Assembly: GCF_001194135.2 (NCBI RefSeq)
Contig: NC_068981.1
Span: 167,229,234 to 167,293,233, forward strand
Length of the DNA: 64,000 bases
Source of the DNA: Octopus bimaculoides
Taxonomy: Eukaryota
Reading direction: 5' to 3'
Shown here in pieces: positions 571 through 61,790 of this stretch. The translations under genes and the position numbers were made by a program. Each line of letters opens with the position of its first letter. Positions within the stretch are counted from its first letter, which is position 1. The notes beneath the pieces were generated by a model. It was not told the origin of the DNA and searched no databases. It saw nothing but the letters and a program-made list of their open reading frames with translations.

Positions 571-655
571 ATATGTACATATATGTATATATATGAACAC
601 AATTGTCATGTGGTGAAGCAACTGTTGCTGATCCCTTAATTTTGTTTATACACAC

Positions 656-919: not shown

Positions 920-2200
920 CATCATCATCATTTAACCTCCGCTTTCCATGCTAGCATGGGTTGGAAGCTTTGACTGGGGACTGGCGAAGCGGATGACTAC
1001 ACCAGACTCCAATCTGATCTGGCAGAGTTTCTACAGCTGGATGCCCTTCCTAGCGCCAACCACTCCGAGAGTGTAGTGGGTGCTTTTTACGTGCCACCGG
1101 CACGAGGGCCAGTGCGGTGGTACTGGCAATGGCCACGCTCAGATGGTGTTTTTTATGTGCCACTTGCACAGGAGTCAGCCAGTGTTTTGTTCACATACAA
1201 CCGGCACAAGTGCCAGTAAAGCGAAGCTGGAAACGACCGCGCTCAAATGGTGCTTTTTACGTGCCACCGGCACGGGAGCGAGACCGCTGCTTTTGCAGTG
1301 ATTCCCCTCGGATGGTGCTGTTAGCGCTCTACCGGCACGGGTGCTAGTCATCGAATTTGGTTAAGTTTCGATCTCACTTGCCCCAACAGGTCTTCGCAAG
1401 CTGAGTTTAGTGTCTATTGAGGGAAGGTTGGCATGGGTGCCAGTGATCAAATTTGGTTCAATCTCGATTTCGATTTCGATTTCACGTGCCTCAACAGGTC
1501 TTCGCAAGCAGGAAAGGTACGCATAAGTGGGCTAACGACACCCCTGGTAAAAGCCACGGGTTATGGTCTCACTTGTCTTGCCGGGTCTTCTCACGCACAG
1601 CATATTTCCACAGATCTCGGTCACTAGTCATTGCCTCGGTGAGGCCTAATGTTCGATGGTCGTGCTTCACCACCTAATCCCAGGTCTTCCTGGGTCAACC
1701 TCTTCCACAGGTACCCTCAACTGCTAGGCTGTGAAACTTTTTCACACAGCTATCCTCATCCATTCTCGCCAAGTGACTATACCAGCGCAATCGTCTCTCT
1801 TGCACACCACAACTGATGCTTCTTAGGTCCATCTTTTCTCTTAAGGTACTTACACTCTGTCGAGTATGCACACTGACATTACACATCCATCGGAGCATAT
1901 TGGCTTCATTCCTTACGAGCTTACGCATGTCCTCAGCAGTCACGGCCCATGTTTCACTGCCATGTAGCATGGCTGTTCGTACACATGCGTCATACAATCT
2001 GCCTTTTACTCTGAGCGAGAGGCCCTTTGTCACCAGCAAAGGTAAGAGCTCCCTGAACTTTGCCCAGGCTATTCTTATTCTAGCAGCTACACTTTCAGCG
2101 CACCTTCCCCCGCTACTGACTTGGTCACCTAGGTAACGGAAGCTATCAACTACTTCCAGTTTTTCTCCCTGGAATATAGCAGAAGTTGTTCTCTGTACAT
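920..2200 (-). mobile_element. RTE-clade LINE, 5'-truncated: ORF2 C-terminus, 3' UTR and (ATG)n tail
   Basis: Minus frame gives VDSFRYLGDQVSSGG...ARIRIAWAKFRELLP, then ORF 1695-2039 KGRLYDACVRTAMLHGSETW...RRLRWYSHLARM, typical of the RTE ORF2 end. Tail is seen as (ATC)n at 920-931 on +. Confidence 0.9.
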
Positions 2201-3022
2201 ATTCAGTGTTGGTGGACCCCTACCTCTACCCGGAATTCTTCACTGTACTCAATGCCAACCCTCATGCATACTGCATAACATGTATGTTTTCTATCTATTT
2301 GTCTATCATTTTTGTTGTTGCTAGAAATTAGTCCCTGTACCAAATTTCGATTGTCATCCCCCGGAAATCAAGATTTATACATGAATTTTATAATTACACA
2401 CGAAATGATATATTATATATAGAAAGGTTTTTGTTCAAAATTGCGTTACTAGAAAACATATTTACTGTTGAATTTCTTTCGCCATATCAATAATGTTTAT
2501 TGCAGTTGTTATTTTTGACTTCGGAAAATAACAAATATTTAGAGACTCTTTCGCTGTTCCATTGGTTAATCCTAATCCATGTTTTGACTCTGTTAACACA
2601 AAAACGTATATAATTCTTTGTTGGTATCAATAGGTCAAACATCAATAAATCACAACATTTTTAGAGTGTTGGACTCCATCCAATATTCAATATGTGCAGT
2701 CGTGAGAATGTCAAGGATTGCTATCCAAAACTTTGCTGAGTTAATATTGATTTCGTTGGTTTAGAGAGAAGGTTATTTTTTTAAAAATAAGAGTAGGGTT
2801 TTTAGTCACTTCAATCGACTCTAGTATAAATATTATTTAAATGTCGATAAGCTGAAAAGTAACATTAACCCCAGATGAATTTGATCTCGAAAGAAGATTG
2901 AGTGATGAAAAGGAATATTATAAGCAATGTACCTGACATACTACAGAAACGGCAATCCACTCTTCGATTTAATAGTTTTCAAAGAATATTGGCAAACATT
3001 TTCTTAAAGCAACCTTTTCTTT

Positions 3023-3095: not shown

Positions 3096-3788
3096 TTCAA
3101 GTCTTTCTTTCGCTGCTCTATGGGTAACTTCCTGACTGTTTTTCAAAGGAAATTTGATTATAGATAACATAAAATAGGCAAATAACTTTCTTTAAAACTT
3201 CATACTAGAAATTATGGATATGAAAATAACGCTCGACTTATACGCAGTAGTCAAAGTTAAACTATTTATACTGAGAAAAAAGAAAAATGCGAAGAAATAA
3301 TTATGTAATATAAAAAAAAGACGATATTAGTGAAGTAGATGAAGTTGATGTTTCGCTGATAAGGTTATAACAATATCAAAGCATACCCAGAATTATATCC
3401 CCTCCTTACTAAACCAAAATAACAGTAGTCTTTGACTAACATTCTTTTTTCTGCAAAGCATAATTTTTACGAGTTAAATAGATTTTTTTTCATAGTATTT
3501 GTAGTGATTATGTTAACATTAACCTACTAATACTAACGATGTCTGAATCTCGCTTGAGTAAAATATCAAATGCCTTTTCATCTAAACTATTTTCTTTATC
3601 ATTTTTTAAATTATATAATGCTTTTATAATAAAAGCATGACATATATTACGGTTATGTATAACTTTCGCTCTTATATCTTCATTTTAAAACCAATAGAAT
3701 ATGCAAATTTCCTTTGTTTTAAAATCCATTTACTTTACCGTTCTCTCTTTTTCGATCCACAGTTTCGTTTAATCACATATATATATAT

Positions 3789-4720
3789 ATGTATCAGAAG
3801 CATGCAGAGTCTTTGCTTGACTTCACTGACGCACTCTTTATGGAGCAGATGGTACATCACCCCACAAAGGGAAAGAATATGCTGGACCTATGTTTCACAA
3901 ACGGCTCAGCACTCATACATGACGTGAAAGTGACACCGACTCTTTTTTCGGACCATAATTTAATAGAGCTAGTGATGTATGGACCACAAAAGACCACGGA
4001 CATACGAAATACTAGAAACGCTCATCTCATCTCTAGTCTGAATTTCCACAAAGCTGACTGGAAGGGCATTGAGAAAGAGGTCCTGAAATGTAACTGGTCC
4101 ACCATCCTCTCGAGGGAAAACATCGACATGAAACTACAGAACTTCTTGGCAACCATATATGACATCTACAGTAAGTTTACCCCAAAGGGAGCACCAAATC
4201 AACGGGCGAAGAAATATATAATACCCAGGGATAGGAGGGTACTAATGAGACTAAGAGCAAAAATCTCAAACCGTCTAAATGGACATCTAAAAGATTTCAA
4301 ACCAATCCACCACGAATGCACTTTGCTTGAGATTGAACACGCACTCAAACTTTCCCATGAAAAGGAAAGGGCAGAAAAGGAAGCCTGGGCTGTCAAAAAC
4401 ATTAAAGCGGACCCTAAGGCCGTCTATAGATATGCGAAAGAATCTGCTTCAGTGCGTTACAAAATAGGACCGCTACTAGATGAAAATGGCTCACCAACAG
4501 TGGACCCCCAGAGGATCAGTGAATTACTGAATACACAATACAAGAGTGCTTTCAGTATACCGCTGGGGAAGCTACGAATGAATGTGCCGGATGGGTTCTT
4601 TGACCCCGAATACACACATTGTGAAATGGCAACTATTGATAACATCAACATAGAGGAAACTGATGTGATATCGGCCATTGAAGAGCTGAGCTCGAATTGG
4701 GCAACGGGCCCTGATGGATT
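3789..4720 (+). mobile_element. CR1/L2-group LINE ORF2 fragment (end of APE endonuclease, linker, start of RT region)
   Basis: 319-aa ORF with PTKGKNMLDLCFTN and TLFSDHNLIEL (APE C-terminal motifs), LNFHKADW, and ATGPDGF just before the junction with an unrelated repeat. Confidence 0.85.
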
Positions 4721-4948
4721 CCTGTCGACCTTGACACATTTCCTGTAATCAGTGAATGTGCTTCACTAGAAATATAATTGTTTGTAAGAGCTTGACAGGC
4801 ATCTTCAGCCAGCTAGTCATGCTACTTCAGGCTGATGACGAGCAAAAACTCAGAAACATGTCCCTGAATGCAGGCTTGGCTGGGTGGAGGTGCTTGTCTC
4901 CCCCTTGTAAACATAAGAACACAAGAAATGTGTCAAGGCCGACAGGAA
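4719..4948. mobile_element. Penelope-like terminal remnant bounded by a 24-bp inverted repeat
   Basis: 4719-4742 TTCCTGTCGACCTTGACACATTTC is the reverse complement of 4925-4948 with 1 mismatch. It encloses a minimal hammerhead motif. Family assignment is inference. Confidence 0.45.
4826..4868 (+). ncRNA. Minimal type I hammerhead ribozyme motif with one stem II mismatch
   Basis: TTCAGG-CTGATGA-C.GAG-caaaaa-CTC.A-GAAA-CATG-TC-CCTGAA: perfect 6-bp stem I, intact core, palindromic ACATGT stem III, GUC cleavage triplet. Confidence 0.6.
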
Positions 4949-6137
4949 GCGGTCCAGCTTCCTAGGGCTAAATAGCAGTAGTATAATTCCCTTATTGGGA
5001 CTGTCATATTAAGTTGACAGTATACAACTACTTTATCGTAACACTGCTGCTTAAGTCTCTCTGTGAGATTTAGAAATGGATCATTTCTAATTTTTGTAAT
5101 CAGAGAATATGTATATATATATATTAAACAGATTTTGTTTTGGTCGTTATGTCCTACTTTATCCCGCTTTTACGTTTAAAGTGATATCTTCAAACAGTAA
5201 CTTGAGTTTTTCTTCTGCATTCAATGATACTAGAATGTTCTCTCTGTGTAGACCTCCGACAGTTTTGGCGCATTTGATGTATGCAGAACTAGTAAAAAAT
5301 ACCTATTTGACTGTCGCTGTACTTAGGTATTCCACTTTCTGTATTATATTACATATTTTTATCATGAGTCAACAAAAACGAATGAGTATTCCGTTTTTAA
5401 ACGAGTTTATAATAATTTCTCTTCTCATATACGGCTTCTAAAACTTGAGAGAAAAGCATGAAAGTTACAAAATCTCAATATCCTTGCTTTAGATATTTAT
5501 CACCTTGTGCCTAAGTAGCTAAATCAATATTCAAAACATGTACGTTAAATAGGTCAAAACAAAACAAAATATAAAGTTTAATATTTTCAAGTTACGAATA
5601 AGTCATCATTAAGTAGTCCACTGAGAATATTGAGAAGGCTCCTGGACTAAATTAGATTATGGACAGCTTCCATTGGAATGTTTATGTTTTACTCTATTCA
5701 ACACAAAGGCTTCTAACTTTAATGGTTATTATAACACTATTAAGCTAATCAGTATTCGAAGATATTTCACAACTGGTAAACAATTTCGTTCATCTTCATT
5801 TATGCAGTCATCAATAAAATATTTTTTTCTAAACGTTTCGTCATGTTTCTTCATTAAGTTTATACACTTGTCAACCATTCTTGATGTTAGTATCGAGATG
5901 ATGGATGGCAAGTGCTGCAGAGTAGGAGGTAAGTTTATAATGAAAGGAACTTGTAACGTGTGTTTAATTCCATGTTGCAGCTACAACACTTTGCTTTTCT
6001 TCGCTGATACATTCGCGAAAGGAATGGGTGGGTTAGTTTCTCTTCGTCCTCCATCTGGAGTTCCTAAAATTCATTGACTATTCAAAGATAGTCTTGTCCC
6101 TGAAAGAGTCAACAAAGCCCGTTTGTAGCACCAGGGC

Positions 6138-6505
6138 GCAGTAAGAGAAAGTAAAACAGCTTCAGCTGGAAATCGACACTGAGTAAGCGACTTAATTCGA
6201 AACCTCGCAATTCGATACTGCCAATTGTTTCTTTTGAGAATATAAAGGAAGGACATTGAATACTTTGGCAGTCACATCCTGCTTAAGAGCATGGGCAGCA
6301 AAACTAAAAGGAAATGGATTCAATAATCGATCGAAGTCGAATTGTGGAATCGGATCGGTGGGGTCTTCTTTCTTTTCACCTTTCGCTTGTTTATATTGAT
6401 GAACACTGTAGAGTTGACAGTATAAAATTGAGAGAAGGTATCGAATTAAGTCGTTTACTCAGAGTCGATTTCCAGCTGAAGCTATTTTCTTTTCTTTACA
6501 CTGCT
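6138..6505. repeat. Imperfect foldback (inverted duplication)
   Basis: 6153-6200 versus reverse complement of 6441-6488: 45/48 identical; weaker similarity continues inward and outward. Confidence 0.75.
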
Positions 6506-11780: not shown

Positions 11781-12177
11781 TCTCTCTTCTATTTTTTAAT
11801 TATCATAAATCTTCAACTGAAGAGGGAGCCAATTTCCAACAAAGATACTGGGCTCAATCCTTGGGATGTAGCTAACAGACAAATTCACATTTGGAACTTG
11901 AGAAAAGCCTTGCATATTTTTACTGTTCCACTCACAAACTGCACTTGCAATGTACAAATTAGCTGGTCGATTTCTCATTCTGAAAATCCTAGTTTATCCA
12001 GATTCTCCTTTAAGCATTTACTAACAAAACCTAGTGCTCCAATTCTTATTGGCATGAATATGAATTCATAGTCTGGATTCAGAAGCTGGAGGTTTCGAAG
12101 CAATTGTCCGTAGACATCCTCTTTTTCTTTAATTTTCAAAGAGATATTTATATCTGCAGGACAGCTGACCTCTATGA
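11781..12177 (-). mobile_element. RLE-type (R4/Dong-like) non-LTR retrotransposon 3' end
   Basis: Minus translation IEVSCPADINISLKIKEKEDVYGQLLRNLQLLNPDYEFIFMPIRIGALG...VSGTVKICKAFLKFQM*. Same family as 45669-46603. (TATG)n on both sides. Confidence 0.8.
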
Positions 12178-12707
12178 CGGTAATACTTGTATGTATGTAT
12201 GTATGTATGTATGTATGTATGTATGTATGTATGTATGTATGTATGTATGTATGTATGTATGTATGTGTGCCTCTTAATTCTACTGATAGCCATCGGCGAC
12301 TAAACAGGCATCTTTACCAAGCCTGCTTGGTAAGGAGAGTGGTTTTCATTGGATGACCTACAGGATGTAATAAAGCCCACCAAAGGACAGATGAATTCAG
12401 TAGATTAAACGGTTACCTAACAATCGAGAGCGAGGGACCCCTTGCCTTTGTTTAGACATTTCTCTCGGAGAAGGAAATTCTGAAATAACACACGCCTCAT
12501 TGCGAGACTGGAGGTCTTGATCGTTTCTGGACTACTTGACTTTGCATTGACTTTAAATTTCAGCACGGGCATTCGTTGTTTTTAACATCAAGGTTAAGAT
12601 AATTTGTCTGTGATAGTCATATTCATCTACGAGTTGACAGGCACTGTGCACGTGTGTATGAGTGTAAAGATCAATATGCAATATTTTGCTGCTTATTGGA
12701 CTATACA

Positions 12708-13150
12708 TACGAGGGGTTACCGAAAAGAAAGCGGAATTTTGCAATATTTTATTCACTCTATTTTACATGCTTAAATTTTTATCGTCTTCAAAGTATTCTC
12801 CCTTTGAAACAATGAATCGGTTCAGGCGCATTTTCCTCTATTCGAAACAGGGCTAGGACTCTTGCAGAGTGATACCTTTTAACGCCTCCGTCGTTTTTCT
12901 CTTCATCTCTTCCACATCTGCAAATTCCGTAGCACCAACTTTCGTCGCCACTGAGGACCTTTGAAAAGAGATCCGGATCAACTTCCAACTGTTCTTTCAG
13001 TTCAAGACATGCATTCGGTTGTGACTGCTTCTTATCTTGCGTGAGCAAGCGAGGCACAAATTGTGCTGTAACTCCTTTCATTCGCAATTCCTCGCTCAAA
13101 ATTCGTTGGCAGGAGCTCCAGGACACACCAGTGATATCAAGTTCGTCAAA
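12708..13150 (-). mobile_element. Mariner transposon remnant, internally deleted
   Basis: ORF 12788-13126 has RILSEELRMK..AQFVPRLLT (WVPRxL-like) and LFSKVLSGDESWCY. TA-CGAGGG terminus at 12708. Confidence 0.85.
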
Positions 13151-13151
13151 A

Positions 13152-13478
13152 ACGTAAAATTTTCACCGTTGAGATTATTTTGCAAGGACCTGAATAAATA
13201 AAAATCCGAAGGAGCAATGTCTGGTGAATATGGTGCAAAATAATCTCAACGGTGAAAATTTTACGTCTTTGAAGGACATAAAAACCACCTTAATGGGTTT
13301 TTTGCCAAGAAACTACCGAAACTCTGGGAAGACGGAATCTTTAAGTTCAAGTAAAGATGGAGAAAGGTTGTGCAACAAAATGGTTCATATTTAGTTGAAT
13401 AAATATCTGATGGCATAATTTTGCTTTGTCTTTTAATTTCCCTTAAAAATCGGCATGAAGTTCCTGGACAACCCAATA
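13152..13478 (+). mobile_element. Second mariner family: transposase C-terminus and right TIR, with an inverted YSPDLAP segment
   Basis: + strand 13234 onward reads LQNNLNGENFT...FFAKKLPKLWEDGIF..RWRKVVQQNGSYLVE*, and TIR GGACAACCCAATA ends at 13478. Minus 13152-13233 reads PYSPDIAPSDF..FRSLQNNLNGENFT. Confidence 0.85.
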
Positions 13479-15799: not shown

Positions 15800-16079
15800 G
15801 CTTTCCCTCTGCCCTTTTTATATCATGCCCTTATAATGGCTTCTTATTCAGCACATTTAAATCAGCTTATTGCCAAGGAAGACTCACTTTGCCACATGAA
15901 GACGCATCACTCATCCGATCTGACATCAATAACCCGTACATATGTGTGTGCGCGCGCGCGCGCGCGTGTGTTTCATAGGCACTAAAGCAGCCTACATTAA
16001 CTGAATGAAGGACTTAATACAAAAGTAACGACTGATATCTTTTAATGATACTATTATTACCTCATGCTCTGTATCTAGC

Positions 16080-16296
16080 GAGATTGGAAAGGAATCCTGT
16101 ACTATGAGCTTCTGCCAAGTAACCAGTCAATTAATTCTGAGAAGCACTGCTTGCAACTGGACGATTTAAAGGCGGCAATTCAAGAAAAACGTCCAGAATT
16201 GGCGAACAGAAAAGGTATTGTTTTCCATCAGGATAATACCAGACTTCACGTTTCTTTGGCGACCCGTCAAAAATTGTTGAAGTTTGGCCTGGATGA
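16080..16296 (+). mobile_element. Mariner transposase catalytic-domain fragment
   Basis: DWKGILYYELLPSNQSINSEKHCLQLDDLKAAIQEKRPELANRKGIVFHQDNTRLHVS matches the HQDNARPH region. Confidence 0.85.
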
Positions 16297-17166
16297 GTGA
16301 CGTCATTAATCTAGGGTATAATGAGTAGATAGCATACATGAGACTCATGGGAATATAGAACAGAATAACACTAACTTAGAACTAAATGAATAACTTACGA
16401 ACTTTGTGTTCCGTCACATGTACTTACATATTCACCTATCATGAAAGAGTTATCGTATGATAGTGTCAGTGGAATTAAAAGAAAAAAAAACTTGAATTCA
16501 TTGGCAGCTGTTGGTTTTCCATAAACATACTATATTCAGGCTTGCACTTTGGAGAAGAACTTTCTAGGTGCCAGTTCATAATTTCTCATGGTACAGGTCC
16601 ATGGAGGCTATCGATTTATTAAATGAGATAGTAGATATGTTTTGTATTTTCTCAAGTGAGAAGCACAACGGCATCATCGAAATATGAACTGAGGAGCCGG
16701 AGATTTTTTTCGTCGTAAGACACACACCTTGGACACTCGTATAAACACTTGTGATATTATATGTCACGACGAGTTATAAATTGTATGTATGTAAAGCAGA
16801 AATAAGTTGTAGGTTTAGAAGTCAATGTAACATAAGAAAAGAATTAACATTATATTTAATTATCTCATGGATCAATTCCAATATTCGTAGAATCTGAAAC
16901 TGATTGCATACTACAGATATATTATATTCAGAGTTTGGAAGGAAACTAATTCTATTAGATTGTTCAATTAAGAATCTGATCTTAAATTAACATTTCAAAC
17001 ATGAGAATATTTACAGGAAACCTGCAATCAGTTTGACTAAACATGAATTGCAACATAATATATTATATTCCAATATAGTTGGGGAAATTTAAGATCTTCA
17101 ACAATAATTTTGTCGAAGATTTTGCAAGTTTTGATAGATATTCACTCCATTATTTGTTTGGACAAC

Positions 17167-23929: not shown

Positions 23930-24112
23930 GCCAGGTAAAGTGCTTAGCGGCATTTCGTCTGTCTTTACATTCTGAGTTCAAATTCCGCTGAGGTCGACTT
24001 TGTCTTTCATTCTTTCGGGGGCGATAAAATGGCTACCAGTGAAACAGTGGGTCGATGTAATCGACTAGTCCCCTCCCACGAAATTTCAGGCCTTGTGCCT
24101 ATAGTAGAAAGG

Positions 24113-24186
<74 letters not shown>

Positions 24187-24635
24187 GGCGGTGAGCTGAC
24201 AGAATCGTTAGCACGCCGGGCGAAATGCTTAGTGGTATTTCGTCTGTCGCTACGTTTGAGTTCAAATTCCGCCGAGGTCGACTTTGCCTTTCATCCGTGC
24301 GGGGTCGATAAATTAAGTACCAGTTGCGTACTAGGGTCGATGTAATCGACTGCTTCCTCCCCCAAATTTTCAGGCCTTGTGCCAATAGTAGAAAGGATTA
24401 TTATTATCAAGGCGGCGAAATGGTAGAATCGTTTGCATGCCGGACAAAATATTTGGCGGAAATTTTTCGGGCTCTCCTTTTTGAGTTCAAATTTTGCCGA
24501 TGTCGACTTTGCTTTTTAACCTTTCGGCTTCGATAAAATAAGTAGCAGTTGAGTACTGGGGTCGATCTAATCGACTGGTTTCCCACCCCCAAATGTCAAA
24601 CCTTATGCGTTTAGTAGAAAGGATTATTATCATTA
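23930..24635 (+). mobile_element. Three head-to-tail SINE family A copies joined by (TTA)n tails
   Basis: Copies at ~23930-24113, 24187-24396 and 24411-24622; each has GAGTTCAAATT..GTCGACTTTG..GTCGATGTAATCGACT..AGTAGAAAGGATTATTA. Confidence 0.9.
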
Positions 24636-25872: not shown

Positions 25873-26340
<468 letters not shown>

Positions 26341-26468
26341 ACGAAAGATAAATGATAAAAGATACCCGTAATGAAAACTCTAATTATTAGTGTTAATGAT
26401 AATTCTTGTCAAGAAAGGTAAGTGAGACAATTCCGAAACATATCCGAAGTTCTCACTGTATTTATTGA

Positions 26469-26583: not shown

Positions 26584-26803
26584 GGCGGCGAGCTGGCAGA
26601 ACCGTCAGCACGCCGAGCAAAATGCTTTGCAGCATTTCGTCCGTCTTTACGTTCTGAGTTCAAATTATGATTATGCCGAAGTCACCTTTGCTTTTCATCC
26701 TTTCAAGATCAATAAAATGAATACCAGTTGAACAATGGGGGTCGATGTAATCGACTAGTCCCCTCCCCACAAATTTCAGGCCGTGTGCCAAAATTTGAAA
26801 CCA
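26584..26803 (+). mobile_element. SINE family A
   Basis: GGCGGCGAGCTGGCAGAACCGTCAGCACGCC head and full body. Confidence 0.9.
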
Positions 26804-31261: not shown

Positions 31262-33434
31262 ATAACCAATTAGGGAGATATATAAGCAGTACTGAGGCCT
31301 CCTGGCGCATATTTGGAATCCCAATCCACGAAAGACACCCAGCCATTCAACAACTTCCTGTGCATTTAGAAAATGATCAAAGGGCTTATTTCACTGCTAA
31401 GACAGCTGCAAATTAAGTTTCAAATCCAAAGGATTCCACTTTAACACCATTTTTCAATCTTTTTCGGGGAGACAATTATGCAAAAACGCTGCAATATCAT
31501 GAGGTTCCTTCTTATTACACATGGAGTAATAATAAATGGAATAGACGAAAAATAGATACAAAGGTTCAAGGTCATTCTGGGATTAAGTTTGGTACAACAA
31601 TTGGTAGAGTGTATACTGTACATCCCAACGAAAATGTATGCTTTCATTTCAGAATGCTTCTTCATGTAAAAAGCTGACCGACTTCATAGGAAAACTTGAA
31701 AGAAGTTGATGGTGCGATTTGCAGAACATATCGAGAAACGTGTTTGAAGTTAGATTTGCTTGCAAATGATCAGAAACGGGAAGCAACACTGGAAGAAGCT
31801 TCAATATCAAAATACCAAAGAGTTTAAGAAGTCTTTTTGCTATTATTCTCAAAAATTATGAAGTAAGTAATCCTGCTGAACTGTGGAATAAGTCCAGAAA
31901 TGAGCTTGCTGAAGATTTCAGGCACCAAATTCAGTTGAGTAATTCTGAGCAAGATATTGGTTTCACTGATGAAACAATACAGCTTTGATTGAAATAGAAG
32001 ACCAAAGTATTTCAACGGGAGGTGAACCTTTAGAAAATTTAGGTCTCCCACTAACTAATAGAGGGGGTCTTAACAGTCTGTCCACTGAATTAATGAAGGA
32101 AATTTCCTATGAAATGGAGGAACTGACCATGCACATAAATGATAATCTTCCCAAGCTTCTACCTGATCAACGTCGTGCATATTCCGCTGTCATAGAAAGT
32201 ATTAACAATAAAGTAGGATGACTTTATTTCTTAAATGCTCCAGGAGGTACTGGGAAAACATTTGTAATTAAACTCCTCCTGACTAAAGTTCGTCAAGAAA
32301 ATAAAATAACTTTAGGTACTGCTAATTCTGGGATTGCAGCAACATTACTACCCGAAGGTCGGACTGTTCATTCAACATTCAAGTTACATTTAGATTTATC
32401 TAACAAAGAAGATCCAGTTTGAAATATATCTAAACATTTTGGAATGGGTGAACTAATACAATGATGTTAATTGTCTGGGGGGAATGTACCATGGCCCACA
32501 AAAAGCTTTTGAAGCTGTGGACAGAATATTAAGAGACATTAGAAATTTTAATTCCATGATGAGGAATGTCACAGTATTATTGTCAGGAGAGTTCTGATAA
32601 ACACTACCAGTTGTTCCGAGAGGAACAAAAGTGAATGAGCTCAAAGCTTCAATAAAGTATTCTGTATTATTGCACCATGTAAAAGCATTTCAACTTTCGA
32701 CAAATATGAGATCGAGGTTTTCAAGAGATCAATCAGCTGAACTATTTGAAGAGCAGCTTTTGGAACTCGGTGAAGCGGGAGTTGCGATTGATGAATAACA
32801 GTTTCTTACACTCAATCCAATATGTAATTCAGCTGATTCTATCGATGATTTGGTGAAATCTTTCCGAATCTTCTTCATAATTACAACAATTCAGATTGGA
32901 TCTGTGAGCAAACTATCCTGGCCCCTAAAAGTGTTACTGTAAATATTGAATAAACTTCGAGGAGAAGTATTCACTTATAACTCAGTCGACAGTGTTGTTG
33001 ATGATCAGGATAGTTTTAACAACCCCATCGAATTTTTGGACTCACTTAAACCATTAGGTACAGCTCATTATTGTCTTCAGTTGAAAAAAGGGACTCCTAT
33101 TATGCTATTGCATAATTTGTTTCAACTAAAATTATGCAATGGTACAATACTAATTGTGCACAAATTTATGAGGAACTGCATTGAGGCAAATATTCTCACT
33201 GGTTGTGGTAACGGTGAGACCTTCTACATTCCTCGCATACCAGTTATACCATTTAATCTCCCATTCCAGTTTAAGCGGTTACAGTTTCCTGTCCAAGTTT
33301 CTTTTGTTACAAGTTTTCTCTTATAAATTACACACAAACAGGATGAGTAAATTATATATATAATACTACTTTGAAAATGGCTCCTGAGAAAGAGTAAAAG
33401 TAATTACCCGATCAACGACGGGTATTACTGCTAG
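31262..33434 (+). mobile_element. Helitron remnant: end of Rep, PIF1-like helicase pseudogene and intact 3' terminus
   Basis: GRYISSTEASWRIFGIPIHERHPAIQQLPVHLEN; IGRVYTVHPNENVCF; YFLNAPGGTGKTF (Walker A); SGIAATLLPEGRTVHSTFKL; LQLKKGTPIMLLHNL..LCNGT..IPRIP..FKRLQFPV. Many stops and frameshifts. Hairpin TACCCG-atcaacga-CGGGTA at 33405-33424, then CTAG at 33431-33434 followed by T. Confidence 0.95.
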
Positions 33435-36173: not shown

Positions 36174-36286
<113 letters not shown>

Positions 36287-38055: not shown

Positions 38056-38602
38056 TTGATTGTGTAGACAATTACCTATCTTGAAACCAGTTGTCTCATC
38101 CATTGGCCATTGGATGGCACACGTGCTGTTGCATGTTGGGAGAATTACAGTATTTGTATAGAGAGAGATAAAGGCAGTTTCTGTGCGTTCGTATTCAGAT
38201 ACATAAGAGGTGGTTATGTTTAACTGTTGCATCACTTGGAATCGCAGCAGGAAGAAAATTCGTCCAAATGCTTTGGTTGCGCCGTCCAAAAGTGATAGAT
38301 TTAATTCTCCCACAATGCAACACCACGGCGTGCGCACACAGTGGCCAATAGATGAGACAACTGGTTTCAAGGGAGGTAACTGTCTACAGTTACTTTGGGC
38401 AATATTTGAGTTTAGCCCATGCACAAAACGACAGCTCCATGACCGCAAGTTTATAGCAAAAGAGGATGAAATTTTGTAGATTTCATGACATGTTCAAGAG
38501 CATTAGCAACGCATGTAGGTTCCGATCGGGATTCGAAAAAAGCTTATGGTACTAGATTGCTTAGGCTGTCCTCTTTCTCTACAATGATTTGTATTTCATT
38601 AA

Positions 38603-39005
38603 ATGCTTAGTGGCATTTTTTCAGGCTTTACTAGCAAAATTCAAACACTGCCGAAGTCTACTTTGTTTTTCATTCTTTCGGGGTCGGAAAAATAAATACC
38701 AGATGAACACTGAGGTCGATGCAATCAACTTACTCCTCCCCCTAAATTGCTGGCTTCGCGCCAAAATTATTATTATTACTATTAATATTAAGGGTAGCGA
38801 GCTGGCAGAATCTTTAGTACGCTGGGCGAAATGCTTAGCAGTATTTCGTCCATCTTTCCGTTTTGAGTTCAAATTCCGCCGAAGTCGGTTTTGCCTTTCG
38901 TCCTTTCGGGATCGATAAAATAATTACCAGTTGAATACTGGGATCGATGTAATCGACCATCCTCCTCCCCCAAATTTCAGGGCTTGTGCCTATAGTAGAA
39001 AGTAC
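38603..39005 (+). mobile_element. Two tandem SINE family A copies
   Basis: Partial copy at 38603-38770, (TTA) spacer, near full copy at 38790-39005. Confidence 0.85.
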
Positions 39006-41738: not shown

Positions 41739-42027
41739 CAGTGTGTACATTATGTAGAGTGATATGCATTCTATGTACTGACAGGTGTGTGTGTGCGCGT
41801 ATGGGCATGTCTATGTATGTGTTATCTTGTGTGCGTGCAACCGCATGGCTCTGCGTGTTTGCGTGTATGTGTACAAGTAACCGTCTTCCAAATCCACTCA
41901 CAAGGCTTTGGTCGGCCCGAGACTATAGTAGAAAACACTTACCCAAAGTGTCATACAGTAGGACTGGACCCTGAGCTATGTAGTTGAGAAACAAGCTTCT
42001 TATGACACAGCTACGCTTGCGCCTATA
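41739..42027 (-). repeat. Inverted copy of 35499-35787
   Basis: About 98% identical in reverse complement. Confidence 0.95.
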
Positions 42028-42616
42028 TATACAGCCTCTGTTTCTGATTTAAGTCTAGATGCAACCAGCCCTGATTTGTTTCATTATCAGAATCGCTGGC
42101 CCTTATAGGGTATTTATCATATAATGACTTACTTTTTTTATCTGTTATGCAGCTCTGAGGTTCTATTTGATTTGGCTAGTGCTTTATTTGCTTCCACAAT
42201 AGGGTTTTCTGTTTCATCTACTTGCGTTAAAATCTCACCGATCTTTACAAATTTATTTGTTTCTTCCGATATTGAGTGCAGTTTTTCGTTACTTTCATGC
42301 TTGCAGACCATTTCAAGTTAGTGTTCTTCAGATAGGTATCTGACCCTATAGTTGCTATCTTTACAGACAGTTGCAATTGCATCAGAACCGACGTTTATCT
42401 TTTCGTGGAATGAACTATCGCCTTCGTCTTTATTACCCCTTTAGTAATTAAGCGAAATCAACTTTGCCTTTCATCCTTTCGTTGTGAGAACTGGAGTCGA
42501 TGTAATTGACTTCCATTCCCTCGAAATTTCTGGACATGTGCCAAAATTATTATAATTAGTGACAGAACCAGTATTAATACCAAAAGGTGGTCATTACATC
42601 CAATTTAACATACTGC

Positions 42617-42685
<69 letters not shown>

Positions 42686-43709
42686 GAATGATACAGCAGC
42701 AGCAGCAGCAGCAGCAACAGCAGTAGCAACAGTAGTACTGTTCCATTTGTGTTAATAAGAGCAACGTTCTATGGTAGAATGAATGGGCGCTTGAATGGAC
42801 CTCACTATAAAACTTAATTTTCGAAATGTGAAAGTATATTTTATATTTGAAATAATCTTACTTTCTTATACTGAACCATATAAACTATATTACTGTAAGT
42901 TAAATGAATTTATATAATTTTATTTCTTTTTATTGAATCCCGTAAGTATAACTAGCAACTTCGGAAGAATTTTTGAAATAAAAAGAAAACGGTCTACGAA
43001 CCAAATTCAAAGAAAAAAGGTTTTTAAATGTTTTTGTTACCTCAAAAGCTGTAAGCACGAAAAGTTTGACAGAAATAATAACATGGAAGTCATTTTGAAA
43101 ATGATTTTGAAATAACTAGGAAGAAATTCTTTTGAGTTGGCACAGCACTAGCTTTAGTTGGGATAATGTGTTGTCAAATGAATCCACCTCCTTAATGGAA
43201 AATGCATGTCGAAAGCGTCCTTCCAAAGATCTGATACAAGAGCAACAGACGGACTTGAAGTGACATGTATAACGTTAACAGATATAAGCAAAACCGCTAT
43301 ACGTTAGATATTCACTCATTCAAAAACAAAAATAATAACACATCACCATCACAACGTATATAGAATTTCATATATATCAGCATCACAACGTATAGGGAAA
43401 TAAACAACAACTTTATAAAATGCAGTATTGCAAAAAAAAAAAAAATACCAAGTCATACAATGGGGACATAAGTAGATGCAACTTGTGGACCACTAAGAAA
43501 TTTATTGAATATATGGTTGTATACATGTATGTATGAAAATATAATATAAGATCAAATGTACATATATATATGCATTTACGATATATCTAATATACATATA
43601 TATTATATGTATTATATAATGTATGCCCGAAATTACACACACACACACATACACACGCACACACACACATGTATACGTATGTATATCTATAGAAGTACAT
43701 ATATCTACG

Positions 43710-43741
<32 letters not shown>

Positions 43742-43882
43742 AGTCTAGAGAGATATAATATACAAACGTGTATATATATATATACATGCATAATACATAC
43801 ATATATATGCATACATATATACATGCATATATACATACATATATATATGGATATAATTCATGATGTGATATGATATATATAT

Positions 43883-43946
<64 letters not shown>

Positions 43947-44511
43947 NNNNNNNNNNNNNNNNNNNNNNNNNNNNNNNNNNNNNNNNNNNNNNNNNNNNNN
44001 NNNNNNNNNNNNNNNNNNNNNNNNNNNNNNNNNNNNNNNNNNNNNNNNNNNNNNNNNNNNNNNNNNNNNNNNNNNNNNNNNNNNNNNNNNNNNNNNNNNN
44101 NNNNNNNNNNNNNNNNNNNNNNNNNNNNNNNNNNNNNNNNNNNNNNNNNNNNNNNNNNNNNNNNNNNNNNNNNNNNNNNNNNNNNNNNNNNNNNNNNNNN
44201 NNNNNNNNNNNNNNNNNNNNNNNNNNNNNNNNNNNNNNNNNNNNNNNNNNNNNNNNNNNNNNNNNNNNNNNNNNNNNNNNNNNNNNNNNNNNNNNNNNNN
44301 NNNNNNNNNNNNNNNNNNNNNNNNNNNNNNNNNNNNNNNNNNNNNNNNNNNNNNNNNNNNNNNNNNNNNNNNNNNNNNNNNNNNNNNNNNNNNNNNNNNN
44401 NNNNNNNNNNNNNNNNNNNNNNNNNNNNNNNNNNNNNNNNNNNNNNNNNNNNNNNNNNNNNNNNNNNNNNNNNNNNNNNNNNNNNNNNNNNNNNNNNNNC
44501 ACACATTTACA

Positions 44512-45019
44512 TATAAAGTAACGAAGGTGGCTATACACAATATAAAACCAATAAGGAAAATTTCAGTGGTGACTAATCGTGACAGAGGGTGCAGGGTAGC
44601 ACCTACATTGCTAGAAATAAAAGTCAAATACTCTTATAACCACAAAAGCACAATATACTGGCAGGGGAGATAACCACCCCATAGCGAGTGAGTTCACTAT
44701 ACTATAAAGCTAGTTTTGCTTGGAATTAAAGCTCATCAGTAGTGATAACTCCATCGCGTATGGTGAAGCTAAATCCTGCCTGTCAATATATTGCATTTAC
44801 CATATGAATCAATAGATGATTCAGCAAAATGGTAATGCGAAAATTATAAAATAACGAAGATGGCTATGCGCAATATAAAGCCAAAACGGAAAAATTAAAT
44901 TGTCACTAATAGTAACTGAGGGTGCAGGATAGCACCTACACTGTTAGACACAAGAATCAAAGACCCTTATAGCCACAAAAAGCACATTGCCTTTGTACTG
45001 ACAGGGAAGATAACCACCC

Positions 45020-45022
<3 letters not shown>
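44512..45022 (-). mobile_element. Retrozyme-like or Penelope pLTR-like element: ~1.5 head-to-tail copies of a ~335-bp unit carrying a hammerhead
   Basis: 44512-44683 repeats at 44845-45022 (offset 333-340, roughly 80% identical); hammerhead lies between the copies; no ORF; left end runs into the gap 43947-44499. Confidence 0.65.
44684..44757 (-). ncRNA. Type I hammerhead ribozyme with G12->A substitution
   Basis: Minus: GCGA-tg-GAGT-ta-TCACTA CTGATGA GCTT-taattcc-AAGC AAAA CTA-gcttta-TAG T A TAGTGA-ACTC-ac-TCGC. Stems I, II and III all pair; GUA cleavage triplet; cut predicted between +44700 and +44699. Confidence 0.8.
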
Positions 45023-45050
<28 letters not shown>

Positions 45051-45391
45051 AAACAAGAGAGAAGATGGAGATAAGATTAATAAAAGTTTATTATCATTGG
45101 CAAGACCAGACATACAATTGTTTTAATTCATCATTTGCAGCATAAAAATTAACCAAATTCAATTTAATTTAACTAGATTAATTTGGTTAATTACTACAAG
45201 TGAGAATATCTTCAGTGACGGATGCACAAAGAAATCTATTATATTTAAAGCAAAATGAAAATCTAAAAACAGGAAGGATACAGTGTACCATTATAGTTAA
45301 AAATATATACACAGTTATGAAAATATATAGTTAGCTATAAATTAGTATAAATAATGATAATGCAGACATACCCATGCAAGATACGAAAAAT

Positions 45392-45546
45392 ATATATGTA
45401 TGTGCCTACTTTGCTAGGCATTCAACCAGTCTAATCTTGGATATTTTTATCCCACCGAGGTTTATATCCTCACTTATACCTTTATATATATATAATGGTA
45501 TAAGTGAGGATGTTGAATGCCTAGCAAAGCAGGTACATACATATAT
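45392..45546. repeat. Two-part hairpin with (TA)n loop
   Basis: 45392-45426 pairs with 45512-45546 (33/35) and 45466-45480 pairs with 45497-45511 (15/15); the left arm carries 39 extra nt between the two parts. Confidence 0.85.
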
Positions 45547-45625
45547 GTATATTTAAATACCCAAATATTTGTCAATATATCTGTCTGTCTGTCTATCTGT
45601 CTGTCTGTCTGTCTGTCTGCATGTA

Positions 45626-45660
<35 letters not shown>

Positions 45661-45668
45661 ATGTATGT

Positions 45669-46603
45669 ATCTCCTATTTTTTTAATTATTATAAATCTTC
45701 CACTGAAGAGGGAGCAGGTTTCCAACAAAGATACAAGGCTCTATCTTTGGGATGTAGTTAACACAGACGAATTCACATTTGGAACTTGAGAAAAGTCTTG
45801 CATATTTTTACTGTTCCACTCACAGATTGAACTTGTAATGAACGAGTCAACCGGTTAATTTCTCTTTCTGAAAATCCCAGTTTATCCAGATCTCCTTTAA
45901 TCATTTACTAACAAAACCTAGAGCTCCAATTCTTATTGGTATGACTATGAATTCATAGTCTGGATATAGAAGCTGGAGGTTTCGAATCAGTTGTCCATAG
46001 ATATTCTTTCTCATTGATTTTCAAGGAGATATTTATATCTGTGGAGCAGCTAACCTCTATGGTGGTACATACCTTTACCCCTCTGTTCCAAACAACAATA
46101 TTCGGCCTGTTATGCTTACATTTGACAGAATTTTTGATGGGAATATTCCACCAATATTCCTTGAATTGGTGTTTATGAATGTATTCCGTAACTGGGATTT
46201 TCTAAGTTTATTTCAGTACAGTATTTTTGTGGATGGCATTGTAAATTGTTTTAGAAACAACATCATGCCGCATAGGGAGGTAGTACCGTGACGACATTTT
46301 AGGACAGTTGCTAATCACATGCGTAATGTCTTTCACGGTAACATGACATAGCCTACACGTTCGGTTGCACCTTGAGATTATAAGAGCATCATTGTCTCTC
46401 TTGTTCACTAGGTACTTTGTGACAATCTCCTTTTTCCTGGATTGCAAACGCATATCCTTCAAAGTGTGATGTGATGTAGTGGTCTTGTGTCCAAGAGAGG
46501 CTGCGCTTCGTGTCAATTCTACTGCCTTCTTCAAGCTTCCGGGCAACATACCCATGCATAGTCTTTTTTTGTATGGTGAATGTTTGCCATCCAGGTCTTC
46601 TCT
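45669..46603 (-). mobile_element. RLE-type (R4/Dong-like) LINE C-terminal fragment with CCHC finger, internally deleted
   Basis: IVTKYLVNKRD..RTCRLCHVTVKDITHVISNCPKMSSRYYLPMRHDVVSK; 45669-46060 is homologous to 11781-12177; (TATG)n on both sides. Confidence 0.85.
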
Positions 46604-46892
46604 ATGTATGTATGCATGCATGCATGCATGTATGTATGTATGTATGTATGTATGTATGTATGTATGTATGTATGTATGTATGTATGTACGTACGTATGTA
46701 TGTGTATATGTATATATATAAATATATGTATGTTTATATATATAAATATATGTATGTATTTGTATATATANNNNNNNNNNNNNNNNNNNNNNNNNNNNNN
46801 NNNNNNNNNNNNNNNNNNNNNNNNNNNNNNNNNNNNNNNNNNNNNNNNNNNNNNNNNNNNNNNNNNNNNNNNNNNNNNNNNNNNNNNNNNNN

Positions 46893-46920
<28 letters not shown>

Positions 46921-46924
<4 letters not shown>

Positions 46925-47040
46925 AGCCTTTGAATGGAAACTGTAAGCTCGATCAGGATTACTTTGCTTAACCTCTTCAGCCCACAGAACCACGTCTGGC
47001 CTCAAGGTTGTCTGGACAACTCGAGGAAAGCAACCAGTCT
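46921..47040 (-). mobile_element. Short RLE domain fragment (HERO/NeSL-like)
   Basis: FPRVVQTTLRPDVVLWAEEVK, frameshift, KVILIELTVS: PD..E restriction-like endonuclease motif. Confidence 0.55.
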
Positions 47041-47484
47041 TGCTTTGGTTAATTAATACTGAAAATGAATATAATCACACGAAGTCTTTTTAGTTTGGAT
47101 AAATTGCTGACAGTTTTCAATTGGTGCGTGAATGTTGATTCATTATGAATTATTGAATGCAAGCATTTGGCAGACAGTTTGAGTTAAATAAAAAAACGCA
47201 GGAAAAGAAAGAAATATAGCACCTAGAATGATATTTTAACGTTTTTATTTTCTGCTTAAATAATTCCTTTCAAAATACTGTGCTAATTTGCATAATTATT
47301 GTAAATTAATTATTTGTCTGATCGATAACTTACTCTATATCCGTTGCAGTGTTTTGCATAATCAGTATGCTGCGTTTTTCTCAGATTATAGGAAAAAGTT
47401 AGTGAAATAAATACTATATTTTAAAACAAGTACTGGAGTTGTTAGAAAACTAAAACGAAAAAAAAAAAGAAACCCCCCAAAAAC

Positions 47485-48789: not shown

Positions 48790-48805
48790 AGATCGGAAGA
48801 GCGTC
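48790..48805 (+). other. Illumina TruSeq adapter remnant (assembly artefact)
   Basis: AGATCGGAAGAGCGTC, the start of the standard adapter read-through sequence, sits exactly at the edge of the gap 48806-48966. Confidence 0.9.
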
Positions 48806-49057
48806 NNNNNNNNNNNNNNNNNNNNNNNNNNNNNNNNNNNNNNNNNNNNNNNNNNNNNNNNNNNNNNNNNNNNNNNNNNNNNNNNNNNNNNNNNNNNNNN
48901 NNNNNNNNNNNNNNNNNNNNNNNNNNNNNNNNNNNNNNNNNNNNNNNNNNNNNNNNNNNNNNNNNNTATATATATAAATATATATATATACATATATACA
49001 TACATACATATACATATACATATATGCATACATACATCCATATATATGTATCCTGAC

Positions 49058-52592: not shown

Positions 52593-52860
52593 TTAGACGG
52601 TGAGTGCTTTCTGTAGTATATGGGCTGTACCCATCAAGGTTATCTTTTGTAGTTTGGAGTTACCAGGGAGTTGCTTAATATACTTCTCAGCTCCCTTCTT
52701 TATCATCCCCAATGCACCAATTACTACTGGTATTTTTGTAGTACTAAGCTTCCACATTTTTGTGATTTCAGTTTGCAGATCTTTATAGGGAGAAAGTTTT
52801 TCGTATTCCTTTCTTGAGACATTTTGATCTTGGTCGAATGGAATCGATTTTTCTCTTTTT
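52593..52860 (-). mobile_element. R4/Dong LINE extreme C-terminus
   Basis: KEYEKLSPYKDLQTEITKMWKLSTTKIPVVIGALGMIKKG...LQKITLMGTAHILQKALTV*; (AAT)n at 52867-52990. Confidence 0.85.
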
Positions 52861-52902
52861 TTTTGCATAATAATAACAATAATAATAATAACAATAATAA
52901 TG

Positions 52903-52963
<61 letters not shown>

Positions 52964-53059
52964 TAATAATAATAATGATAATAATAATTATTATTTCATA
53001 TGCAAACGACAGATTAAACTGTTGGTAAAGGAACATTCCCAACATGGGGTTACAAGAAG

Positions 53060-53490
53060 TAACCTTAGATATTAAGAACATTCCTAAGTATCTTAGTTGT
53101 CATTAATAAAACTGTTTTCTGGAGCGTCACTACACTATGCCTATTTCTTCTATCCATCTGTTCAAATCTTTAGGGATAGTTTCTAATGCACCTAGTTTCC
53201 AATGGATCAGTCTTGTCACATTGTCATGTCGTCTTTTGTATTCACGATTATTATCATTATTGAGTGAGAGAGCAGTGCATGCCATCAAAGTGACACTGGG
53301 GTAAAATATACGAAGCCCAATATACACATCATGACTACCCGTCTGATAAGGGTACACCAGGCACATGCATCACAACCATATGTGCGCGACATGGTGATCT
53401 CATATCAAGATAAACAGCGCATGACCTCGCAGGTGGGGCCCAGTTAAAATTTTCTTCAGGTCGAGTAGCCCATCCCACTCAAAAGGTCCC
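53060..53490 (-). mobile_element. Deleted Dong C-terminus joined to a truncated family D element
   Basis: REYKRRHDNVTRLIHWK fused to LGALETIPKDLNRWIEEIGIV; 53261-53490 is the first ~230 bp (on +) of family D. Confidence 0.75.
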
Positions 53491-56101: not shown

Positions 56102-56270
56102 TATTATTATAATTATAATTATAATTATTATTATTATTATTATTATTATTATAACTGAGTGAGTCACTAATGTAAGCTGGAAGGAATGTCTCCTATATGT
56201 AACGTGTCCGAGTTGTATCATATTGTGTGTTGTTAGCATTTTTTAAAAGACACTTCTGTGATTTCTTGAA

Positions 56271-56470
56271 GAATCGTTAGCATGTTGGGTGAAATGCTTA
56301 GCGGTATTTCGTCTGCTACGTTCTGAGTTCAAATTCCGCTGAGGTCGACTTTGCTTTTCATCCTTTCGGGGGTCAGTGAAATAAGTATTAGTTAAGCACT
56401 GGTGTCAATGTAATCGACGTACTCACTCCCCCAAAATTTCAGGCCTTGTGCCTATAATAGAAAGGATTAT
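56271..56470 (+). mobile_element. SINE family A
   Basis: GAATCGTTAGCATG..TTCTGAGTTCAAATTCCGCTGAGGTCGACTTTGC..GGCCTTGTGCCTATAATAGAAAGGATTA. Confidence 0.9.
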
Positions 56471-59879: not shown

Positions 59880-60085
59880 TCCACTGACGTCAACTTTGTC
59901 TTTCATCCTTCGGCGTGGAAACGACATTTCGTTCGTCTTTACGCTCCGAATTCAAATTCTGCCGTGGTCGACCTTGCCTTTCATCCTTTGGGAATCGAGA
60001 AAATAAGTACCAGTTGAACACTGAGGTCGATGTAATCGACTTACTTGTTACCCCGAAATTGTTGGCCTTGTGCCAAAATTTGAAA
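59880..60085 (+). mobile_element. SINE family A (short fragment followed by a near full body)
   Basis: GTCAACTTTGTCTTTCATCCTTC, then CCGAATTCAAATTCTGCCGTGGTCGACCTTGCCTTTCATCC..GGCCTTGTGCCAAAATTTGAAATC. Confidence 0.8.
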
Positions 60086-60759: not shown

Positions 60760-61790
60760 CTATGCTCGGATCAAAGCATAGGACACAACCCTCAATATCA
60801 GCAGCGGAACCCGACAGCATATGCTGGTTTACCCCTGCTGCAGCATGCTAGTTTCGTACCCCTTTGAGCATTTCACTCATCCGTCCACAAACACTCTCCA
60901 AGCTTTCCTATCATTTATAAATTATCTTGCCTCTCTCACTCCAACACCTCTAACCACAAAATCTTTCCTCACTCCATCCATCCACACAAACCGAAGTCTG
61001 CCTCTGGTTCTGCTGCCTACCACTTCTGTCTTCATCACCCTCCTTACCATCCGCCCCTCATCCATCCTCTCCATGTGGCCAAGCCACCTCAACATTCGTC
61101 TATCCATTTTGGTTGTTAGTTTTTCTCTCACTCCTGCTCGCCTTAGTACCTCCTCATTCTTCATCCTGTCCTTCTGTGTTACATCAACCACAGCTCTCAA
61201 ACATCTCATCTCAAAAATATCTAGTCGCCTCTTTTCCGCATCTCTCAGCTCCCACGTCTCTGCACCATATAACATTGTCGGCACAATTACACCCTTATAC
61301 ACACCTCTTTTCGCTTTCATACTCAACCATTTATCTCTCAGCATACCTTTCACAACTCCCCTCCCTCACTCTATATCCCATTTCCTCAGCCAACCTCCCA
61401 TCCGCCGTCACATGTGATCCCAGATACTTAAAAACACTAACCTCCTCTAACATCTCACATCCACCCTACCAGCCATTCCATCTCTCGAACATCTCATCAC
61501 CTTACTCTTAGCTACATTCACTTTCAGTTTCCTCCTCTCACACACTCTTCCAAACTCTATCACCAGTCTCCTCAGTTGCTCTTCCGAATCCGCCACCAGT
61601 GCCATATCATCAGTAAACAACAACTGACTCACCTGCCATTTCTCTCCATTTTCTCCCACCATTTGGGTTCCTCTACCAAAGGTTCTATCATTTACCTCTC
61701 TCACTACACCATCCATATATAAATTAAACAGCCACGGAGACCTCACATAACCCTGTCTTAACCCCACCTTCACATCAAACTACTCACTTC
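60760..61790 (-). mobile_element. Second RTE-clade LINE: RT domains, C-terminus and 3' UTR
   Basis: KVGLRQGYVRSPWLFNLYMD..LLFTDDMALVADS..LKVNVAKSKVM (61447-61773) and GVIVPTMLYGAETW..LRWLGHMERM (60922-61353). Confidence 0.9.

Follow-up and report, generated by a model that had tools for sequence, protein, structure and literature searches.

A 64-kb stretch of the Octopus bimaculoides genome (contig NC_068981.1; the whole stretch is called the window below, and positions are counted from its first base) carries a 508-nt non-coding insertion on the minus strand, 45019-44512, in which a type I hammerhead ribozyme motif is embedded in a head-to-tail repeat. Our analysis favours the view that this locus is an old, inactive copy, 1.5 units long (A-B-A), of a metazoan retrozyme-type element without long terminal repeats (non-LTR), probably mobilised by the machinery of Penelope-like elements. 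We prefer this reading because a canonical motif lies within a ~340-nt, non-coding head-to-tail repeat of low G+C content, as has been published for non-LTR retrozymes of metazoans (PMC7229834). An earlier note, made from the letters of this DNA alone, had interpreted the locus as either a retrozyme or a Penelope pseudo-long terminal repeat (pLTR); the canonical type I motif and the 340-nt non-coding repeat sustain that interpretation in part, but the locus is not an array.

Read directly from the sequence, the motif has type I hammerhead architecture and occupies 74 nt of the minus strand (44757-44684), as GCGAUGGAGUUAUCACUA-CUGAUGA-GCUU-UAAUUCC-AAGC-AAA-ACUA-GCUUUA-UAGU-A/UAGUGAACUCACUCGC, where the slash marks the predicted point of cleavage, 44700/44699. 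Three segments make up helix I (GCGA/UCGC, GAGU/ACUC and UCACUA/UAGUGA): the core-proximal part of 6 bp is followed by a 2-nt UA bulge in the 5' strand, 4 bp, a 2x2 internal loop (UG/AC) and another 4 bp. The CUGAUGA box (44739-44733) is intact, helix II (GCUU/AAGC) has 4 bp and a 7-nt loop (UAAUUCC), and helix III (ACUA/UAGU) has 4 bp and a 6-nt loop (GCUUUA). The cleavage triplet at 44702-44700 is GUA, which conforms to NUH and is known from some natural hammerheads (PMC1636495). All 22 stem pairs of the motif are Watson-Crick pairs, the flanking pairs G10.1-C11.1, A15.1-U16.1 and C15.2-G16.2 are all present, and there are three helices with helix I open. The geometry would suit a putative contact between loop 1 and loop 2, with the UA bulge of helix I six pairs from the core and the 4-bp helix II capped by 7 nt, as in published motifs (PMC4209133). 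Each of the minus-strand elements described beforehand was found in its place. Of the 11 conserved core bases, CUGANGA plus GAAA, ten are present, the sole defect being at position 12, and the motif is thus a hammerhead by architecture and not an intact hammerhead.

G12 is invariant in hammerheads, in which it serves as the general base. At the octopus locus an A stands in its place, just as the earlier note had it. The context AAGC-A-AAA at 44717 is the product expected of a CpG-to-CpA transition in AAGCGAAA, and the observed/expected ratio of CpG in the element is 0.5; we infer, in agreement with the route proposed before, that G12A arose by a single CpG transition. In full-length hammerheads this substitution slows cleavage 1e5- to 1e6-fold (PMC2553840). 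With A12, the octopus copy would, by analogy with those ribozymes, be incapable of cleaving itself at a useful rate. No monomer is releasable from the locus even with G12 restored, since 1.5 units contain a single ribozyme.

The insertion has the layout A1-B-A2, in which B, with the hammerhead at its end, occurs once and is flanked by two copies of A. The copies share 79.4% identity over 175 nt in blastn (E = 1e-38) and were matched by nhmmer as well (E = 5e-25); aligned globally, they match at 139 positions and differ by 18 transitions and 11 transversions, with 7 gap columns (82.7% identity). The repeat period is 333-340 nt and the A+B unit measures 340 nt, in keeping with the monomer of ~339 nt deduced at first sight, and its G+C content is 37%. 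Likewise, the claimed lack of a coding frame holds: the longest open reading frame (ORF) across the unit has 48 codons. The recurrence at roughly 80% identity was described correctly but its limits were not: the copies are 45019-44845 and 44679-44512, and TAT at 45022-45020 is part of the flanking (TA)n. The repeat is head-to-tail, as described, but with 1.5 units and one ribozyme it does not amount to a tandem array. It is the only head-to-tail repeat of such kind found in the window, ~0.8% of which it covers.

Both ends of the insertion adjoin microsatellite sequence. In minus sense, the TAT that closes the 5' flank corresponds to the UAU found just ahead of the repeat start in a full unit, and short TA microhomology between unit and flank is seen at both junctions; by comparison, 2.2% of the window positions lie no more than 3 nt from a TA or TG run of at least 16 nt. 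At the other end, homology to A stops at ~44512, and the next 12 nt (the ATGTAAATGTGTG region) are unlike the start of B. Beyond them lies a gap of 553 N (43947-44499), which on the plus strand has (AC)31 at one edge and CACACA at the other. Further units hidden in this gap, as had been suggested, are unlikely and were rejected as an explanation, because the homology ends before the gap and both edges are (CA)n; the gap is most likely unresolved (CA)n rather than additional units.

Folding predictions suggest that the unit RNA would be largely self-paired. The 340-nt unit has a predicted free energy of -97.4 kcal/mol, against -74.6 +/- 4.7 kcal/mol in dinucleotide shuffles (z = -4.9; -4.9 to -5.5 over the predictions), with ~61% of the bases paired, and the complement is 14 kcal/mol less stable than the minus strand. 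In the predicted fold, the first 24 nt of A pair with a strand of B, UAUUGACAGGCAGGAUUUAGCUUCACC, just 5' of the hammerhead, and the remainder of A1 to form a long imperfect hairpin. As the start of A pairs with B next to the ribozyme, helix I would be extended into a long rod, a shape that has been published for retrozyme circles (PMC7229834, PMC7761336).

Among the alternatives, the one that survives best, to which we nevertheless grant only a small probability, is that the locus is a fragment of a Penelope-like element rather than an independent non-autonomous retrozyme, a pair of pLTR pieces from a copy that was truncated at its 5' end or deleted internally. Insertions of Penelope-like elements take the form of partial tandems with hammerhead-bearing pLTRs, and these elements favour microsatellite targets (PMC8557442), octopus genomes contain them (PMC13282606, PMC8967140), and their expansion in octopus lies at a Jukes-Cantor (JC) distance of ~0.2 (PMC13282606), to be compared with ~0.196 between A1 and A2 by our own arithmetic. 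In addition, a 2026 preprint derives animal retrozymes from pLTRs, blurring the distinction between the two (10.64898/2026.07.22.740005). However, the six frames of 41900-43946 and 44500-47300 hold no Pfam match to a reverse transcriptase (RT) or GIY-YIG domain at E <= 1, so that the adjacent Penelope ORFs named in advance as the distinguishing sign left no signal within 2-2.8 kb on either side. The 340-nt period is also too short for an ORF, and the motif is canonical, with a stable 4-bp helix III and without the long helix II of the Penelope-like hammerheads (PMC4209133). It is this canonical architecture, combined with the lack of a nearby RT or GIY-YIG frame, that favours a retrozyme over a pLTR.

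Several observations weigh against the retrozyme reading. By the working definition, a retrozyme array is a dimer or longer with a hammerhead in each unit, so that two cleavage sites flank a monomer, and this locus does not conform to it. At the Rfam gathering thresholds nothing matches in the whole window; in a 601-nt search, the score for Hammerhead_HH9 (RF02275) was 16.6 bits (E = 0.35), where the cut-off is 52, and a whole-window search by E-value has no hammerhead among the 150 of 165 matches listed. The Rfam comparison envisaged in the earlier note therefore yielded a full-length HH9 alignment but fell short of the curated threshold. For the motif, the most stable predicted structure (-18.9 kcal/mol) differs from the canonical hammerhead fold (-17.2 kcal/mol): it keeps the whole of helix I and pairs the core region differently, a situation that is common among hammerheads and does not discriminate. 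For the unit, the z value is unexceptional in this genome, with 3 of the 32 unrelated 340-nt window segments used as controls reaching z <= -4.5 and equalling it relative to shuffles. Across 42 predicted pairs, A1 and A2 differ by no compensatory change, with seven pairs kept after one-sided changes and nine broken. Finally, a multi-copy family is something that we infer, as neither the window nor a 22-kb stretch of an Octopus sinensis chromosome contains a second copy of the unit, or of segment B. The search for monomer copies thus recovered the recurrence of A in A1 and A2 and nothing beyond it in these two sequences, of which the second is not orthologous to the first.

Wider searches had no bearing on the question of relatives. 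Exact-pattern scans with a conserved 23-mer of the repeat and with ribozyme-based patterns returned 0 matches in metagenome contigs, viral contigs and prokaryote genomes, collections that evidently lack cephalopod DNA. The spurious reading frames of the repeat had 0 matches in a protein database that holds only annotated cephalopod proteins, which makes this result uninformative; as a control, an ORF of a long interspersed nuclear element (LINE) in the window found a single Octopus sinensis protein there, and a concatenated query of transposon ORFs matched two O. bimaculoides proteins and no others. Pieces of the sequence searched for in literature text gave only chance matches, in papers on primers for porcine epidemic diarrhoea virus.

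Some of these points, namely the Rfam scores far under threshold, the lack of relatives in the window and in 22 kb of O. sinensis DNA and the lack of covariation between A1 and A2, would, together with the one wrong core base, also suit a hammerhead-like motif that arose by chance in a local tandem duplication or in two nearby unrelated repeat copies. We searched both strands of the window with a descriptor that calls for at least 5 bp in helix I, 4 bp in helix II and 3 bp in helix III and tolerates at most one core mismatch, and it matched 44757-44684 only. A first-order Markov simulation yields 0.007 such sites per window, with 0 perfect-core sites in 293 simulated windows, and an analytic estimate for the loose descriptor gives 0.0025 per window. 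At the scale of a 2.7 Gb genome, the loose descriptor would produce ~100-300 chance near-motifs, which counts for the chance origin and against ours. With stricter criteria (G10.1-C11.1, C15.2-G16.2, helix I of at least 6 bp and helix III of at least 4 bp), by contrast, the expectation drops to 2.6e-6 per window, or ~0.1 per 2.7 Gb genome, and to 8e-7 per window (analytic) if a closing helix beyond loop 1 is also required, as helix I runs on past the loop into two more helices; these criteria were picked after the motif had been seen and the resulting estimates are generous. Moreover, the motif sits within a retrozyme-sized repeat that makes up ~0.8% of the window, which puts the combined probability per window at roughly 0.007 x 0.008 or below, and CpG decay would be expected to produce just the one defect that it has. 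Given the low descriptor expectation and the position within a retrozyme-sized head-to-tail repeat, we regard a chance origin of the motif as unlikely. A functional host or element RNA that tolerates A12, whether as a very slow or cofactor-dependent cleaver or as a domesticated structured RNA, is highly improbable: the stems are unusually intact relative to the diverged flanking repeat and the motif strand folds better than its complement, but the rate loss caused by G12A in full-length hammerheads (PMC2553840), the lack of any evidence of conservation, the absence of covariation and a location between microsatellites in transposon-rich DNA all speak against it.

If the locus is a retrozyme-type relic, its formation can be envisioned by extension from published retrozymes. 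In a family transcript longer than one unit, the type I hammerhead would cleave past the GUA triplet, releasing linear RNAs of ~340 nt with 5'-OH and 2',3'-cyclic phosphate ends, which a host tRNA ligase might then circularise into a largely self-paired rod. Penelope-like RT/GIY-YIG machinery could copy the circle or a multimer at a nicked (TA)n/(TG)n site by target-primed reverse transcription, leaving an insertion that exceeds one unit. If the template was circular or multimeric, an insertion of 1.5 units whose ends do not coincide with the cleavage site would be explained. Assuming that A1 and A2 were identical at the time of insertion, their JC distance of ~0.196 would date the event to roughly 25-30 million years ago (calibration from PMC13282606). 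The same assumption implies ~10% substitutions per copy, whereas the 74-nt ribozyme is altered at a single core base and its stems are free of mismatches and G-U pairs, a discrepancy that is unexplained and that also counts against the retrozyme reading. Either A1 and A2 already differed in the template, or the copy belongs to the well-preserved tail of many decayed ones and was noticed for that reason.

An undescribed cephalopod retrozyme family is conceivable, although we would put it at less than an even chance: by analogy with known retrozymes, its intact members would self-cleave as monomers, with the help of an unusually stable helix III, accumulate as abundant circles of ~340 nt and reach (TG)n/(TA)n microsatellites by way of octopus Penelope-like elements. 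No description of hammerheads or retrozymes in cephalopods was found in the literature searched, and recent octopus repeat annotations mention neither (PMC13282606). Were there a family with intact copies, it would add cephalopods to the hosts of ribozyme-bearing circular-RNA retroelements, offer a type I hammerhead whose helix III is stable, together with a clear case of insertion into a compound microsatellite, and bear on target choice by Penelope-like elements and on their priming on circular or multimeric templates. As a single dead relic, the locus by itself leaves the knowledge of hammerheads and retrozymes unchanged.

Table 1 Features of the insertion and its flanks, and copies of another interspersed repeat, in the octopus window (segments in minus-strand order where stranded)
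Feature	Position	Strand	Basis
5' flank (minus sense): (TG)5(TA)10T, abutting the first repeat base	45020..45050	.	sequence read, repeat search
Segment A, copy 1 (A1), 175 nt	44845..45019	-	blastn, nhmmer, alignment, fold
Segment B, single copy, 165 nt, hammerhead at its end	44680-44844	-	
Segment B, 5' part, 87 nt, with local hairpin and the strand UAUUGACAGGCAGGAUUUAGCUUCACC	44758..44844	-	fold
Type I hammerhead motif	44684..44757	-	sequence read, sub-threshold full-length Rfam match, descriptor scan, folds
Helix I, 5' strand	44757-44740	-	
Helix II with its 7-nt loop	44732-44718	-	
Core position 12, A for G (AAAA for GAAA)	44717	-	sequence read
A13 and A14	44716-44715	-	
Helix III and loop	44714-44701	-	
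A17	44700	-	
Helix I, 3' strand	44699-44684	-	
Segment A, copy 2 (A2), 168 nt, 79-83% identical to A1	44512..44679	-	blastn, nhmmer, alignment
3' flank: ATGTAAATGTGTG, 553-N gap (44499-43947), (GT)31, AT-rich repeats	43885..44511	.	sequence read
SINE-like repeat copies	24193-24351, 38799-38957, 56270-56418, 23930-24066		
SINE-like repeat copies	26590-26756, 59926-60042, 24421-24576, 38601-38731		

The surroundings of the insertion (Table 1) are transposon-rich sequence of octopus affinity. The transposon ORFs of the window match only proteins of Octopus sinensis and O. bimaculoides, at 81-85% identity, and the window shares interspersed repeats of 70-94% identity with the O. sinensis stretch, which fits the cephalopod origin surmised from the letters. 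Fragments of LINEs, Helitrons and other transposons are present, the LINE and Helitron fragments far away from the insertion. LINE fragments lie at 3723-4745 (+), 1698-2219 (-) and 60925-61779 (-); the first covers an endonuclease-RT region, with a weak match to Exo_endo_phos_2, and 61450-61779 holds an RVT_1 RT domain (E = 1.5e-14), while 60-62 kb displays a strong negative GC skew and a G+C content above that of its surroundings. A fragment of a Pif1 helicase 2B domain at 32946-33326 (+; E = 7.8e-12) is probably a Helitron remnant. By eye, 16079-16297 (+) and 12791-13162 (-) resemble mariner/Tc1-type transposases; Pfam gave no match for 12788-13126. A conserved C-terminal peptide (…IPVVIGALG… / …PIRIGALGFVSK…) recurs at 11978-12313, 45956-46201 and 52596-52850, all on the minus strand, and probably derives from the tail of a retrotransposon ORF; the peptide is abundant in the genome, and its two scanned copies, 46208-46450 and 52596-53081, had no Pfam match. 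At the start of the window, 1-645 (-) is an open frame of 215 codons that runs off the edge and includes a CCCH zinc-finger-like stretch, CKFYLNGTCWHGEKGRNCKFAHP.

Apart from the insertion, the window contains a short interspersed repeat of ~160 nt that resembles a short interspersed nuclear element (SINE), with at least 8 copies in the window and one in the O. sinensis stretch (3915-4074), at 72-90% identity. For the insertion itself, the idea of a SINE with a tRNA-like or RNA polymerase III-type head was tried and rejected; ARAGORN finds nothing in the window. The three controls with strong predicted folds, ~6132-6471 (+), 4844-5183 (-) and 26063-26402 (+), have z values of -4.7 to -6.1 and probably hold transposon inverted repeats. 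Sub-threshold Rfam matches to microRNA families (mir-3149, mir-297, mir-568, mir-1277 and others), at 36198-36286 and at many (TA)n/(TG)n runs, are low-complexity artefacts, and the 150 of 165 matches listed from the whole-window search by E-value comprise nothing else. Twelve gaps of N interrupt the window, most of them bordered by microsatellites, and 8 of the 12 adjoin (TA)n, (CA)n or (TATC)n on at least one side; gaps of this assembly mostly mark unresolved microsatellite, and their stated lengths are probably estimates. Beside the gap 48806-48966, and after (TATC)n, the Illumina adapter core AGATCGGAAGAGC (continuing GTC) is present as an exact match at 48790-48802 (+), for which the chance expectation is 0.03; it is an artefact of assembly or read trimming.

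The octopus insertion can be set beside several known systems. Schistosoma Sm-alpha and newt satellite 2 are dispersed or tandem non-coding repeats of ~330 nt whose type I hammerheads have a helix I of 6 bp and a loop 1/loop 2 arrangement. Compared by description, they are alike in repeat size and type I motif, yet they comprise thousands of active copies, against one dead copy here. The Rfam family Hammerhead_HH9 (clan CL00010) aligns over its full length (positions 1-77), with an equal order of helices and a loop after 6 bp of helix I, whereas its stem sequences are different, the loop of the octopus helix III is longer and position 12 is A.

Hammerheads of animal Penelope-like elements are minimal, with a helix II of 7-8 bp, only 4-5 bp in helix I and a helix III that is very short or absent, and are active as dimers, whereas canonical metazoan type I hammerheads have a helix I of 6 bp, a helix II of 4 bp, interacting loops and usually a very short helix III (PMC4209133). 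The octopus motif shares with the pLTR hammerheads the type I topology, the partial tandem repeat and the (TA)n/(TG)n adjoining the insertion (PMC8557442), but it is canonical and not minimal (PMC4209133), and there is no RT/GIY-YIG ORF between or beside the octopus repeats, with the 553-N gap unreadable. Insertion into a microsatellite, seen here as (TG)5(TA)10 on the 5' side and TGTGTG-gap-(GT)31 on the 3' side, is compatible with mobilisation by Penelope machinery but is not specific to pLTRs.

Metazoan non-LTR retrozymes are non-coding head-to-tail repeats of 150-450 bp with a G+C content below 45-50% and devoid of LTR, PBS and PPT, such as those of 350-390 bp in Mytilus galloprovincialis and of 220-245 bp in Acropora millepora (PMC7229834). 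Their expression yields both linear and circular RNA forms, 170-400 nt in size, and they are thought to owe their mobility to Penelope-like elements (PMC7229834, PMC7761336, 10.64898/2026.07.22.740005). The octopus locus differs from them in its 1.5 units and single ribozyme, where retrozymes range from dimers to 62-mers (PMC7229834), in the mutated G12 and, relative to metazoan type I motifs, in a helix III of 4 bp with a 6-nt loop instead of the usual 1-2 bp. It resembles the retrozymes described by Cervera and de la Pena in 2020 (PMC7229834) in its canonical type I hammerhead, in the non-coding unit of ~340 nt with 37% G+C, in the head-to-tail arrangement, in a predicted self-pairing of its RNA, with the ribozyme at one end, that some unrelated window segments equal relative to their shuffles, and in the presence of Penelope-like elements in the host genome.

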